A stretch of DNA of 64,000 nt from Aplysia californica (lineage: Eukaryota). Shown here piece after piece: positions 6,883 to 62,515 of the stretch. Positions within the stretch are counted from its first letter, which is position 1; every line of letters begins with the position of its first letter. The position numbers and the translations under genes were made by a program. The stretch is taken from contig NW_004797808.1 of NCBI RefSeq assembly GCF_000002075.1, positions 260,102 to 324,101 on the forward strand, given 5' to 3'. Below the pieces are notes generated by a model. The model ran no database searches and had not been told where the DNA came from. It was given only the letters and a program-made list of their open reading frames with translations.

Positions 6883-6978
6883 TCTAGATCTAGAAATCTA
6901 GATATCTAGATCTCTGTGCTTTTTCGGTAGTTCCCACCCCCCTTATTTGAGCCTGACCTACTTCTAGATCTAGATCTA
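6883..6978. repeat. (TAGATC)n-type palindromic array, SmD3 intron 1
   Basis: tctagatctagaaatctagatatctagatct (6883-6913) and tctagatctagatcta (6963-6978). Confidence 0.9.
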
Positions 6979-7131: not shown

Positions 7132-7254
7132 TACTCTTGGGGCCAAAACCAGTGAATATAACAATTGCGGAGTGGGAACTACCGAAAAAGCGCCTAGATC
7201 TCTTGTGAGGGAAGACTTTGGACTATTGTGTACATATGCTTGGGTTGGGATGTG

Positions 7255-7447
7255 GGAAGGACTTCCGTAACGAGCGACCACCCCATCAAACACAATAAAG
7301 AAGAGGCCTAGATCTAGATCTAGACCTAGATCTAGATTAACCCTACCCCTATCCGTAACCCTAACCCTACCCTTACCCTTACCCTTACCCCTACCCAAGC
7401 CCTCAATTCTGCTCTCTCATAGTGGTCGCTCGTTACGGAAGTCCTCC
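7255..7447. mobile_element. MITE with 9-bp TSD (MULE-like) and telomere-like core
   Basis: TIR aggacttccgtaacgagcgaccac / gtggtcgctcgttacggaagtcct. TSD tgggatgtg at 7246-7254 and 7448-7456. Internal taaccct/taccct repeats. Confidence 0.88.
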
Positions 7448-7745
7448 TGGGATGTGTGTATCCAGTTTCAATTGTGATATCTAGATCTACATATGATCAC
7501 TATTAGATCTATTGGTAGTTTTGCTGATGTACTTTCAAAACAAGCTTTACTTTGTCCGAGGCCCATCCTCGAGACCTGGCAGTTAAACTGTTTCAATCGC
7601 GCGTTTGCATCACTTGACATGACTTCAGTGTGTGTTCCTCCTGTGTCGAGGACCATCAGTTGAAGAGGTTTTTGGGTAGGCCTACCTTGGGGGGGGGGGG
7701 GGGTGTTAGACACCTGGACTAAGTGTAGTAGTGCTTGACGTGATA

Positions 7746-56301: not shown

Positions 56302-57955
56302 TATTTAATAAACATATTTCTGCTTGAGTTTGGGTGCATTTGCGGCATACTTCTAGAGTCGCCTGCGTAGGTACTACACAGAAGCGTAGGCTTGCCTACC
56401 CTCATTCAAAACACGTCAAGTTGAAGTTGGTAGCTCTAGGGGTTCGTTCAATAAAATTAGGAACAAATTGACCCACTTAGACATGAGGAGCTTGGAAGGA
56501 TAACCAGGAAACCACTCATTTTACTGTACATAATCTTTCAAATGAGTTTGAATTTATGAAAAATGATATTACCTAATAAAGTTTATAGATAGTTTTGAAT
56601 ACCATTTTGTGCAGGTAAAAAGAAGAATTAGAATGCAAAACATTCGCAAATTGACCTATACTATTTCTTTTCGACCCCCGGAATGTGTGTAACTACTTGT
56701 GACTTATCAACCTATGAGAGGGGATTGGATCTTGATCTATAACTTATTAATGTGTTCATAACACATTATGAATAGAAAGCTAAAGATAAAGTGTTGTTTT
56801 CAGACTTGGCATCGTTTCACTCGGTGGCAATTGACGCTACCTAAAAATATGGGGGGTTTCAGGGGGCATGCCCTTGTGTATGTAACCAGAATTTGATGTT
56901 TTGCAATTAGGTTTCATATTTTGCTTTGCTCACAGCGATCCAAACATCATATCGTCATGGGCAGCAAAAAGTAGTAATTTCCAACCATATAGAAAACACA
57001 TGTAATCAGTAATTGTATCGTTTAGTCAAATTTGACAGTCTAAGTAGATCTAGTCTAGATCTAGATGTAGAACTAATAATTGTTGAGGCCAAAACTGAAT
57101 TTCGCGGTTAAGTAGATTCAATAGTAGATCAAATGTAAGTCTCAACAGGGAGTCATATATAATATAGGCCCTTTAACTATTTCGAAGTGGCTATGGGTAC
57201 GGCCCTCCCGTACGCATAGCATCGAGGCTATGTGTACGCCCCTCCACTTCACATAATAAGCTAGGCTGTGTATGTGGCACATAATAAACCTGACACTTCA
57301 ACTACAAGTAGACAAACTTAAACCCAGGAAGTGCGCAGGCCCTTTATAAAGGGCGTAAGCCGGGCTACCCGGGAAGCCTTCTATATAGGGATGACCTACT
57401 TCGATTGGGAAGCGCGCAGCTATAAAGGGCATAGACGCTGACCATTTTTCAATGGAAAATTTCAGCATTCCTTATATGGAAAATGACATAGTATATTACA
57501 GGTCAATGTTATAAATAGTGACCAATGACTTTGCAAGTTATCTTGACCTCGTAGAGTGTCTCTTGACCAAAGATTGTACATAACAAAATAGTTCACTAAG
57601 CCAAAAAGGTGTCCACGGAAGAGGGCACCGCCGAATATTGAGGACACTTTTTTTAATTGGCCAAATTATAGAGGAGTGAACTATCTTGTTATACACGATC
57701 TTTGTCTTGGCCAAGATATTGATCGATAAAGTCACGCAGTCCAGCTGAGCGATTATCAAGGCCGTGAGCATACTTCTATCTAAATCTAAGGGCCTTTCCG
57801 TGCCTACGCAAAACATGCGATTAAACGTAGAAGGACGCAAGCTATTTTTAGGTGTAGTGCCCATCTTGTTTGACGTCAGACCAGGATACCCCTCCGATCA
57901 TGTGACTACATCTAAGTATAGGCAACCGCATGGCACCAAAGATGGAAATGTATTA

Positions 57956-58855
57956 CAGTAGTCTCCGCCTAAGATCCCACCTCCTACAATCCCGGTTCGC
58001 TTAAGATCCCGTTGTTTTAAGAAAACAGAATTTTTACTATACAAAAGTCACCCCTAAGATCCCGCTCTGATTCACTCTGAAGGTCTACATTCGGCTAAGA
58101 TCCCGCATTTCAGATCATAATTTGAGGAAAAAATAGTTGAGATAAATAAACAGTCCGTCGCGTCAAAGATCAACCACTATCGTGAATGTGATCACATACA
58201 CGTTGTACAACTCGATGAAGCGATACAATGTTAGCCCCAGACCGGATCACACCGTTTTTCTGAACATCGCACTCACACCTGAGCTCTCCACCTAAACTTA
58301 CATCACTCGCTGGGTGGGCAGGGCCTACACGTTCGCTCCAGACGGGATCACATTGAATGTCCCAGTGAACTCTTCCCTGACCATTGCAGAAGTTGTCTCT
58401 ACTCCCGAATTTTCGAGACAGGCTGAATTTAAATCGGTGTGTTCACAACGTAATGGTGTGTAACGACAAAGGCGGTTGGGGGGTAGGGGGGGGGACTCAG
58501 TCAGAGATGGAAAGCTATAAATTTTCAACAGGTAAGAGGGAGGGGCAACTGGTTACGCGTAGATCTTGAGACTCATGATAGGATAAAAAGCGAAAATGGC
58601 ACGCCTCATCCCACTATGCACTGTAATAGATAAGTCATCAAGGTTAACCACTCTTTGCTCGCAATATGCCATAAACCCACCAAGAGGTCATGTCAGTTCA
58701 TTTTAGAGTGGAGGGAGACAATTGTACCTATTGTGAGCCTTAACATGGATCACCATAGATTCTTCCCTGGGTTCATCGGTTAAGATCCCGGTTCGCCTTA
58801 GAAGATCCCGCATTTCCTTGCTCCCGATCACCGGGATCTTAGGCAGAGACTACTG
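57956..58855. mobile_element. pogo/Tigger-type MITE (900 bp)
   Basis: TA|cagtagtctccgcctaagatccc ... gggatcttaggcagagactactg|TA. Repeated taagatccc motifs. Confidence 0.9.
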
Positions 58856-58889
58856 TATATTAAGCTTAATCTACCTCTCGCTGTCAGAA

Positions 58890-58971
58890 GTTCTGATGGC
58901 CGAATAGACAGCGCGTCTGTGTTCAAAGTCATGCAAAGATTTTATGAGCGGTTCGATCCCGGTCCCGGCCA
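58890..58971 (+). pseudogene. tRNA-like sequence (degenerate)
   Basis: A-box-like tggccgaatag, B-box ggttcgatccc, ends ...ggcca followed by ttttt. Confidence 0.45.
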
Positions 58972-59107
58972 GTTTTTCTTTCTCTTCTCCTCCGCCCGAC
59001 TGACCAACAGTTTGTCCCATAAATTATAATTTGTTACTTTTAGTTTGAAATTTTAAAATGTATTAGTGATTAAAAATGCAGGGGGGGGGGGGGGGGGGTT
59101 AGTGTAG

Positions 59108-59864
59108 TAGATCTAAATTTAGATATCTAGATCTAGATATTATCTAGTCCTCCTGCGTCTTTACGGCAATTTTCGTGCGGTCTTCCATCATGTCCAGGTA
59201 GGCCTAATAGATCTAGATCTAGAATTTAGATCTAGATCTAATCTAGAATCTAGATTTAGAGATCTAATCTAGAATCTAGATCTAGATCTAATCTAGAATC
59301 TAGATTCTAGATCTAGATCTAGAAAATCCGAAATGTTACCGAAAACACGTCGTTCCATGTTTGGGTATCCCAGGAAGTGATGACATCAAATTACTAAAAT
59401 AAGCAGCCAATCAGAAAGATGCGTCATTTCTAAGTTTAACGGCATGTCAAAGCAACAGGCTATTTTAAGTCAAGACACAGACAGTCACAATCAACCACTA
59501 GAATTAGGGAAAAACTTCCGTAACGAGCAACCACCCCATCAAACACAATAAAGAAGAGGCCTAGACCTAACCCTACCCTTACCCCAAGCCCTCCCCCAAG
59601 CCCTCAATTCTGCTCTGTCTCATAGTGGTCGCTCTTTACTGAAGTCCTCCCAGAATTGGAATCTAGATCTATATCTAGATTCTAGATCTATATCTATGAT
59701 AACAATGATGGCAATGAGGACTACCTTCTACATCTAGACTCTAGATTTAGATCTAGATCTATGCGTGTAGATCTATTCCAGACTCTATATAATGTGACGA
59801 GTCTCGTGTCGATATTTTAGTTATCTTGCACAAATTCTACTTGCAGCCAGACAGTAGATCTAGA
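59108..59864. repeat. Cluster of (TAGATC)n-type arrays in NOC4L intron 1
   Basis: Arrays at 59108-59147, 59207-59323, 59661-59697, 59733-59775 and 59856-59864. Confidence 0.93.
59508..59650. mobile_element. Second copy of the 7255 MITE (9-bp TSD)
   Basis: Same TIRs and body. Flanks tagaattag / cagaattgg (7 of 9 match). Confidence 0.85.
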
Positions 59865-59921
59865 CTTATCCAACTATCATAGCATGGGTGCAAATGAAAA
59901 TCAGTGGACGAAATTGTTTAC

Positions 59922-60410: not shown

Positions 60411-61471
60411 GTGAAATGTCGAACTCGTGCGCAGACAGGGTGCGCACACAAAACTACTACGTTCACTGGCAATGCAATGAGGCAGCTTTGCCTAGCCTAG
60501 GCTAAAGCAAGAAACTGGTTGTTGGATCGTGAACATTTTTTACAGATTCCGTGAAATAAATGATGACTAATGCATTTGTATCCTCAGTTAATGCGTTGGC
60601 AATGCTTTTGAGTCACTGTGTTCATGCATAGAAAATATTTTGTTTTGTAACTGACGTATTCGCGATTTTATTTTTTTTGGTCGCAGTCGCAGATCACCCC
60701 CACTGGCCTTTATTTCGCAGCATCATGCATGTTATCCACCATACATTGCCGCCCAGATCAGGCCCCGGCGCCAAGAAGCAAAGCAAAAGTTTATGCGAAA
60801 CTTTTAGCCCTTGAAGTTATACAATGGGATTCGCTTCCTGGGACTGGGTATTTACATATCTAGATCTAGATTAGAATCTAGAACTTACCTTCTATGTTTT
60901 CAGTGACTCATCCTTTTTTCTTCTTTTTTTTGTAAGAGACTTTCAAAGGTGAGATTGGGTTACATGTCTCAGTCAGGGTTTTACTTGTACAACAGAGTGG
61001 TTATCCAGGTAAATTTTTACTTTCACTCCCGCACACAGATACACTGCTTCAGGGGTCAAACTGCTGTACACTGTTTGCTGCAGATCACACATAAATAATA
61101 AAGTCACTAAAACTGTCGCAAATCAATCATTTTCAGGAAAATTTCAAATCTAGGCCTAACTGTAAAATATCAAATTATGGGTTAAAACAGGGGGCATGCC
61201 CCCTGTAACCCCCCAGATTTTCTTTTACACCAGGTGGGCAGGCCCCCCTGGAACCCCCGATTGGTCCACAGCACGTCTGTCTCGATTAAGAACAATAAAT
61301 TATTTCAAAAACTATTAATTTGCGACGGAAAAGAAGTTGATATTTGTGTTCAGCGCATCAATATCTAGTAGAAAATGGACAACTGGTAGCCTATTGTGAG
61401 ACGGGAGGGAAAGTAAAAAAATACCGTTATCCGTACAATTGTGCGAACAACTCTGTCTAGATCTAGTTATC

Positions 61472-61662
61472 GGGAAGATTGAAGAATACCGGACCACCCA
61501 TACATCATACAGTATTGTTCTCCTGACAAATTATTAATGAATAGATCTACTGGTCCGAGATTCTCCATTGAGAGATCATTAAAAAAACTGGGGGAAATCA
61601 TGAATTCCTAAGGTTGAGACAGGCAAAGTCAGTCCGCTGGTCCGGTATTTTTCAATCTTACC
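61472..61662. mobile_element. MITE with 8-bp TSD and GG termini (Merlin/MULE-like)
   Basis: gggaagattgaagaataccggacca / tggtccggtatttttcaatcttacc. TSD tagttatc at 61464-61471 and 61663-61670. Confidence 0.82.
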
Positions 61663-61839
61663 TAGTTATCCGTATAAGTGTCCCCACTATTGCTACACCA
61701 TTGTACGAATAATTGCTTCAGGTATCCGTACAATAATAGGCCTACGCCTAGGCTTTCTCAGTTCCAGGCCATACAGTACAGCCCGCACGACTGGCCTCAG
61801 CATTGGAGGCCTAGCAACCGCGTTCCCAAAGGGTCAATG

Positions 61840-62515
61840 CAGAGATGCCAACCAGTACGATTTTACGTATTTTAGTACGATTTTTGGCCGAAAATACGCG
61901 AATACGACTTTTCATGAAAAAATACGCATCCTGGAATGCGAAAACTACGAGATTCAGCTTGGGCGAGTAAACTTAATTATCTCAGGTCCCATCTTTTGTC
62001 AAAATAGTATCAGTATCGCAGAACTGGAATATTTGAAAGGGAGTGTATACAGACCCGGTAACCGGGAATAAAGTCGCAAAGTATACAGACCCGGTAGGGG
62101 AACTCTTTGTGATTTCGGAAAGTTTCAGTATTCAGTACCCTCTTGGCTCAGGGTAGAACTAGGTTCTTCTAGATCTATACAGACAGATATAAATCATTGA
62201 TCTAGTTTCGAGGCTAGCCTAGATCTAGATAGATCTAAATCTAAATGAAGATTGTGGATGTCTTTTCGTTGAACGATGGTTTTTCACCCATTTTGGAGTT
62301 GGAGGAATCACAGTTTGAAGAAAAGGACATGTCATAATTTCAATCGAGCAGTCACCCTCTCTACTTCTCTCTCTCTCTCTCTCTTTCTCCCTCTCTCTCT
62401 CTGTGTATCGCTCGCATTCTCTTTTTCTTTGTTTGTCTCTGTCTTTCTTTCTCCCCACCTATTTCCCACTCCATCTTTCTCTCGTTCCCCCCTGCCCCTG
62501 CTCTCTTTCTCTCTC

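Follow-up and report, generated by a model that had tools for sequence, protein, structure and literature searches.

Excision of Tc1/mariner transposons leaves short footprints in the donor DNA. Examples are the TA-CATG-TA footprint of Tc1, the 6-bp footprint of Minos and the canonical footprint of Sleeping Beauty. Excision scars are normally regarded as rare, isolated marks. We know of no description of scars that stack into arrays like those considered here, and literature searches for (TAGATC)n arrays or for stacked footprints did not find one.

Several other described elements are close to the present case. MITEs that bear microsatellites or other tandem repeats are reported, in the excerpted accounts, from pineapple (PMC8449440) and from a clam (DTC84, PMC3879986). 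hAT elements with the target NTCTAGAN are given in Table 1 of PMC3014272. MuTAnT elements are Mutator-like elements that target TA microsatellites, according to the excerpted part of their description (PMC4486113).

The DNA analyzed in this work, called the window below, is a stretch of 64,000 nucleotides of Aplysia californica (positions 260102-324101 of its contig). It was compared with the genome, which was searched as 927 Mb in 4,332 contigs. Our main reading is a composite one, and we assign it a probability of roughly 0.58: the TAGATC arrays of this DNA are mostly carried by mobile elements and resized by slippage, while their units are scars of TA-duplicating transposons of at least two kinds.

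A previous reading of the window, made without database searches (the sequence-only reading), had described irregular TAGATC arrays, and all of them are present where it placed them. It had also claimed that the arrays, if split at TA, yield a closed set of spacers. We defined this set as {G, GA, GAT} combined with {none, C, TC, ATC}, plus {C, TC, ATC}. The claim holds for 62 of the 85 TA-to-TA spacers (73%): GATC 37, TC 7, GA 5, GAATC 4, GATTC 3, ATC 3, GAT 2, and GTC 1. The pattern is far above chance and extends over the whole genome, and the closed set is no artefact of splitting at TA. On the forward strand of the genome (TAGATC)3 occurs 8,369 times and (TAGATC)4 occurs 2,352 times. TRF gives a period of 6 at every array site of the window, i.e., the copies are arranged head-to-tail with a unit in the range of 1-6 bp. 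Apart from the arrays assigned below to the two MITEs, M725 and M145, the window has the following ones (arrays are given without strand):

6883-6978: two short arrays, 6883-6915 and 6963-6978
25648-25773: the largest array of the window, abutting a further interspersed repeat that matches 25676-26061
57045-57066: short array with a GTC unit
59661-59696: array outside both MITEs, directly 3' of M145
59727-59761: array outside both MITEs, with units GACTC and GATT included
59855-59866: two-unit patch within a single-copy stretch
60858-60882: short array bordering on single-copy DNA
62212-62243: short array with a GCC unit, within repeated sequence

Array 6963-6978 is embedded in another interspersed repeat, which continues on either side of it, and array 6883-6915 lies just upstream of the same repeat. 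Besides the arrays in and next to M725 and M145 at 59108-59761, those at 6883-6978, 7309-7339, 25648-25773, and 62212-62243 also touch repeats. Elsewhere in the genome, several array-bearing stretches with flanks 90-98% identical occur within 35 kb (G000:C1:2.51-2.55 Mb, L123-L127); they go back to a local duplication or else belong to one more family of repeats that carry arrays. The window also has an open frame of 592 aa with several C2H2 zinc fingers (27630-29408, + strand; Pfam PF00096, E = 3.6e-15).

The arrays at 59108-59140 and 59208-59323 belong to a mobile element with the following parts:

57813-59448, + strand: copy of the MITE family M725, with near-identical copies elsewhere and high read depth
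59081-59098, no strand: poly-G tract internal to M725, just upstream of array 1
59108-59140, no strand: array 1, internal to M725
59141-59207, + strand: 67-bp M725 spacer, with a TAGGCCTA octamer at 59199-59206
59208-59323, no strand: array 2, internal to M725
59325-59448, + strand: 124-bp M725 3' terminus, recurrent in the genome

The consensus of M725 is about 725 bp long, its imperfect terminal inverted repeats start with ACATGC, and 9-bp target duplications were found in all five copies read. M725 and M145 both have inverted repeats, a target duplication and a high copy number, and both are non-coding, as expected of MITEs. The internal order of M725 is a poly-G, a short array, the 67-bp spacer, a second array, and the 124-bp terminus; the poly-G varies from 7 to about 18 G between copies. 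In the window copy the 5' part has diverged, some 900 additional bases are present at 57952-58855, and no clean target duplication was seen at the borders (57813-59448). At least 65 bases of the spacer recur with 100% identity in 34 places, and there are about 150 candidate copies of it. Of 40 scored copies of the terminus, 28 show an identity of 93-99%, and for 24 of the 40 it is 97-99%; the genome has more than 2,000 first-look candidates. The skeleton of array 1 is common to more than 20 other copies, where variation is confined to the middle part. Over 57443-59795 and 60882-62300 the reads of four other runs are thousands deep, owing to the piling up of paralogous contigs inside repeats; nearly the whole region is therefore repeated DNA.

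M725 is a young, high-copy MITE, and its two arrays arrived along with it. The sequence-only reading had interpreted the arrays as excision scars stacked one upon another. For 59108-59323 the in-place part of this idea fails: these arrays are internal parts of M725 and therefore cargo, which slippage has resized, and they were not built where they now stand. The idea that all arrays are MITE cargo was rejected as well: of six pure arrays and 20 variant sites taken at random, none is part of M725. A tRNA-derived SINE identity of M725 had been considered on account of a GGTTCGATCCC-like box; it was discarded in view of the inverted ends, the 9-bp duplications and a negative ARAGORN search for tRNA. 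A very abundant repeat that ends in ...GGGTGAGAATAGCCACTTTC was met at L007, L054, L066 and many other loci, and at L066 one copy of it is inserted into an M725 terminus.

The second MITE, M145, is represented in the window by two copies:

59508-59651, + strand: M145 copy of 144 bp, with terminal repeats GGAAGGACTTCCGTAACGAGCGACCAC and an internal CCCTAA-like run
7246-7450, + strand: second M145 copy, which holds array 7309-7339

The first copy begins fifty-nine bases past the end of M725. Its inverted ends are of the perfect type, and it is flanked by an 8-bp duplication (59500-59507, AGAATTAG; 59652-59659, AGAATTGG). Duplications of 8 bp were found in about 25 of 32 copies of the family. A telomere-like CCCTAA/CCCCTA run is internal to M145 (59508-59651, 7246-7450; L072-L111) and is in register with a TA every six bases (GGCC-TA-GACC-TA-ACCC-TA). 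Most arrays of the window are cargo: two lie inside M725, and others are beside M145 or in or beside further repeats.

The present-day length change of the arrays is ordinary, as seen from whole-unit differences among copies. In 29 distinct M725 copies the flanks of array 2 are 99-100% identical, and the array spans 10-116 bp (116 bp in the window; 10-102 bp in 22 other distinct copies). All 29 copies have one ordered skeleton, in which GAATC is followed by ATC plus GAATC and these by GATTC. Between these landmarks the count of pure TAGATC units varies from copy to copy, and there are also block duplications, one of which is 24 bp long. Across single-copy arrays, the contigs of two other runs, made from separate samples, deviate by 12 and by 6 letters from the reference. 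Existing arrays grow and shrink by whole units and blocks, through slippage during replication or repair synthesis.

These facts are also what a plain hexanucleotide microsatellite would show. Such a repeat would have arisen a few times, would have been spread by mobile elements, and would have changed by slippage, substitutions and small indels only, with no scars involved. It fits the differences among MITE copies, which are mainly of whole units, and the length differences of 6 and 12 nt seen in other runs. It is further favored by the embedding of arrays in at least three repeat families, by the private changes in M725 copies, which are mostly substitutions or 2-nt duplications, and by the excess of substitutions at G/C positions, which fits the common GC-to-AT bias. 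Nevertheless, we consider this explanation unlikely, since it does not account for the unit spectrum.

The spectrum was counted genome-wide on the forward strand, in the context of a pure unit, a variant x, and a pure unit. One additional base at the center of GA^TC was found 3,482 times (about 90% A or T), whereas the counts were 28 for T^A and 27 for TA^G. In +1 insertions the center thus exceeds the other tested positions more than 100-fold. The center +1 variant, a 7-mer unit, reaches 0.42 of the count of the pure triple (8,369) and outnumbers every substitution class counted in the same context (G, 896; central A, 198; T of TA, 112). A microsatellite would have its indels evenly spread and its interruptions mainly due to substitutions; instead, center +1 insertions dominate. 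In a unit without a homopolymer run, a positional bias of this size that exceeds substitutions should not result from slippage. The probability that three pure units are followed by a fourth one is only 0.28. The bias persists in 146 kb with M725 masked, and 20 of 20 center-insertion sites taken at random on contig 1 lie outside M725, so it was not inherited from this MITE. TA itself is not invariant, because the central A/T is substituted only about twice as often. Arrays break off after TA, TAG, TAGA, and TAGAT in 27, 26, 23, and 16 cases, and after C or the next T in 4 cases each; therefore arrays start and stop on whole CTAG cores.

Slippage and substitution together fail to account for the units, as the sequence-only reading had argued on the basis of the closed set, although long pure runs still need slippage. 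Units other than those of the GATC series also speak against a plain microsatellite. TA+GGCC units inside GATC arrays are about as frequent as TA+GGTC units, which need a single substitution. This is about 70-100 times the number predicted from two independent substitutions, by our own estimate. Among the 16 palindromic tetramers, TA..TA is the commonest flank pair in the window for three only: GATC (54 of 236 occurrences), GGCC (12 of 157), and CATG (11 of 268). The other tetramers have 0-6 occurrences with such flanks. In a second sample (125 kb of fetched loci, with M725 unmasked) GGCC was strongly enriched and CATG weakly.

The window has isolated octamers of both kinds in unrelated contexts, 12 of TAGGCCTA and 11 of TACATGTA; the latter is the classical Tc1 scar. 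The 12 sites of TAGGCCTA are distributed over 6280-61744 (e.g., 7677, 16288, 39036) at about 20 times the Markov expectation; C is the next letter in 8 of the 12, and G precedes in 6 of the 12. The 11 sites of TACATGTA within 11227-63772 amount to about 7 times the expectation in the window.

The most direct evidence on the origin of units comes from lone TA sites of old repeat copies, where hundreds of copies reveal the ancestral state. At site 1 of M145 (C-TA-G), 17 loci have gained TAGATC alone and 9 have longer arrays. Another four have a unit of the +7 class (three with GAATC, one with GATTC). In two copies units are present at the next TA too. One of these is the window copy at 7246-7450, where units are inserted at the internal lone site GGCC-TAGA-CC and at the TA that follows; site 1 is bare in about 30 of 32 other copies examined. 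At site 2 (CA-TA-GT) 390 copies are bare, and 35 have an insert between duplicated TAs. Eight of these inserts are of the GATC/GATTC type, three are of the GGCC type, and 24 are others (about 18 plain tandem duplications and about 6 garbled local repeats). The G-TA-A site in the terminal repeat of M145 has GGCC+TA in two copies and GATC in none. Inserts at an A-TA-A site are confined to local repeats and expansions rich in A/T. A lone C-TA-T site of an abundant repeat unrelated to M145 gained GATC+TA once and duplications seven times, and a comparison of two M725 subfamilies gave one further GGCC+TA at a TA.

Thus letters appear between two copies of a formerly single TA, as in Tc1/mariner footprints. 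They are palindromic and do not depend on the local flank, with GATC, GATTC, and GGCC recurring unchanged across sites. The sequence-only reading had expected such insertions at lone TA sites, and untemplated GATC, GATTC, GAATC, and GGCC, each followed by a second TA, are indeed found in old repeat copies. Untemplated GATC+TA and GGCC+TA at lone sites are not expected of a plain microsatellite.

Not all of these cases are independent. Three of the site-2 cases belong to a subfamily. The site-1 copies with inserts have no diagnostic substitutions in common, and a single variant master copy may be the source of their insertions. At least five or six independent insertion events remain. GATC insertions were seen only where C precedes TA or G follows it, and none was seen at GTAA, TTAC, or ATAA sites. 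Two CTA sites in the terminus of M725, which is young, and one CTAG site in another repeat were free of insertions, and the scar-forming process may be old or rare.

The restriction of GATC insertions to sites that have three letters (TAG or CTA) in common with the unit suggests another, transposon-free process. Breaks at TAG-like sites would be repaired by short copying from one of the many arrays already present (microhomology-mediated template switching), and arrays would in this way seed new units. Array-like patches lie within about 200 bp in 5 of the 8 site-2 copies of the GATC type, and within 40 bp in roughly one fourth to one third of the M145 copies sampled without bias. However, at least one derived copy (L135) has no array nearby, and GGCC+TA at the G-TA-A site has only two letters of homology. 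The isolated TAGGCCTA and TACATGTA octamers in unrelated contexts do not fit either, and such repair leaves it unexplained why palindromic tetramers only are inserted. We regard templated patching as improbable.

The lone sites also bear on hAT elements, which the sequence-only reading had named as its own alternative, with TCTAGA targets. Insertion into NTCTAGAN with an 8-bp duplication and hairpin repair would produce TCTAGA cores joined by 0-2 A/T. This scheme predicts an identical spacer set between the cores, and NTCTAGAN is the published duplication consensus of lizard hAT MITEs (PMC3014272). In addition, the hAT-like M145 often adjoins arrays. The scheme fails at the inserted letters, which are not duplicates of the local 8-bp target: CC-TAGA-CC becomes TAGATC-TAGACC, and CA-TA-GT gains GATC+TA. 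M145 duplications have no preference for TCTAGA, and a CAG-type end is absent among the 25 commonest starts tabulated, which cover under half of 370 array boundaries. The same letters at different sites, not copied from the flanks, match scars derived from transposon ends rather than the hAT model, and we consider the latter very improbable.

We return to the composite reading and to the scar origin of units, which we infer, whereas cargo and slippage are shown. The proposed source would be a cut-and-paste transposon that duplicates TA on insertion and has ends 5'-GA(T)...(A)TC-3'. Its excision would leave TA, 2-3 end bases per side, and TA, and the spacers GATC, GAATC, GATTC, GATATC, GAT, and ATC would result. 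The TA+GGCC+TA scar would be left by another type of element, whose ends are GG(C)...(G)CC. At a lone TA such scars would be seen as insertions of +5 to +8 (GATTA, GATCTA, GAATCTA, GATATCTA, GGCCTA), preferentially at TA flanked by C and/or G.

Every scar of this kind would create new C/G-flanked TA sites, and existing patches would draw further events. Such preferred targets would explain both the stacking and the GGCC units mixed into GATC arrays, which a plain microsatellite does not predict. In a stronger version, scar stacks would be self-reinforcing, re-hit by more than one element type through the new C-TA-G targets, and a microsatellite would be born without slippage. We propose this version tentatively and find it somewhat less probable than its negation.

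The location of the arrays may be informative too. Array hits and all 12 TAGGCCTA octamers fall only in 2-kb bins with a CpG observed/expected ratio of at least 0.66, which are 15 of the 32 bins of the window. The low-CpG stretches at 28-36 kb and 40-48 kb have zero array hits and zero TAGGCCTA octamers. The arrays and octamers may therefore record where the germline genome was open to transposons.

The element itself was sought through its predicted ends. No element with TA/GAT...ATC/TA ends, as predicted by the sequence-only reading, or with TA/GGC...GCC/TA ends was found in about 400 kb, and no parent that duplicates TA and ends in the fitting bases turned up in this sample. The genome does have transposases of this superfamily: a search with the PF13358 profile gave 1,159 Tc1-type candidates. 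Each of the 150 candidates that were scored passed the cut-off, and some of them have open frames. The ends of the one Tc1-like family examined are TA/AACTAGTC, unlike those predicted for the source of scars. The Tc1-like family at L143:360-2122, L144 and L145, about 1.76 kb long, has TA/AACTAGTCAAC ends, copies 96-97% identical, and 288-aa open frames with zero internal stops at many loci.

Three candidate parent ends were tried and rejected. The GATCTTGCGAGAAC motif lies within an abundant repeat, which really ends in ...GCCACTTTC. The pair TA/GACTG...CAGTC is an internal 33-nt palindrome of another repeat. Identical ATCTAGAT word pairs with inverted neighbors proved to be array-to-array matches. 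A repeat built around the 33-nt perfect palindrome AAGTACGGCTAGACTG-G-CAGTCTAGCCGTACTT has several of these per element (L067:1880-2480, L123:470-800).

The idea of stacked excision scars thus stands in part. Untemplated units at lone TA sites, a GGCC series that behaves alike, and more than 1,100 Tc1-type transposase candidates agree with it, whereas the limitation of GATC to C-TA or TA-G sites, the bare young repeats, and the failure to find a parent in about 400 kb do not.

If the scar origin is true, tens to hundreds of thousands of short palindromes would be scars, by rough extrapolation from the window, and scars would underlie a whole class of irregular simple repeats. Transposons would then be a driving force in the birth of microsatellites, and their past cut-and-paste activity could be read from the scars, which possibly show where the germline genome was accessible. 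On the practical side, the arrays lie in or beside mobile elements and are therefore poor single-locus markers. Microsatellite marker development in molluscs is known to be difficult, and the poor marker value of these arrays fits this experience.

The units resemble Tc1/mariner footprints in the duplicated TA around 2-3 terminal bases per end and in the short palindrome with +5 to +8 bp variants; additionally, the classical TACATGTA octamer is enriched in the window. To our knowledge, no known Tc1/mariner terminus has the letters GA(T)/(A)TC or GG(C)/(G)CC. Unlike the known footprints, the scars proposed here have no parent in the about 400 kb searched and are stacked, up to about 20 units, with (TAGATC)>=3 arrays in the thousands.

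M725 is like the MITEs of pineapple and clam, as far as the excerpted accounts describe them, in being a non-autonomous element with inverted ends and an internal simple repeat that varies in length by copy and spreads together with it (PMC8449440, PMC3879986). It differs from those accounts in that the repeat also occurs in several unrelated elements and free-standing, and in that its units are irregular in length with a fixed TA anchor. With hAT elements of the NTCTAGAN target (PMC3014272) the locus shares the TCTAGA core, which is the repeating palindrome here, and the presence of a hAT-like MITE in the region; unlike them, the local M145 has no TCTAGA preference, and the units are not target duplications. 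Finally, in the excerpted description of MuTAnT (PMC4486113), as in our case, a simple AT-rich palindromic repeat is associated with insertion of a DNA transposon. There, the repeat is the target, whereas here it is apparently also the product.
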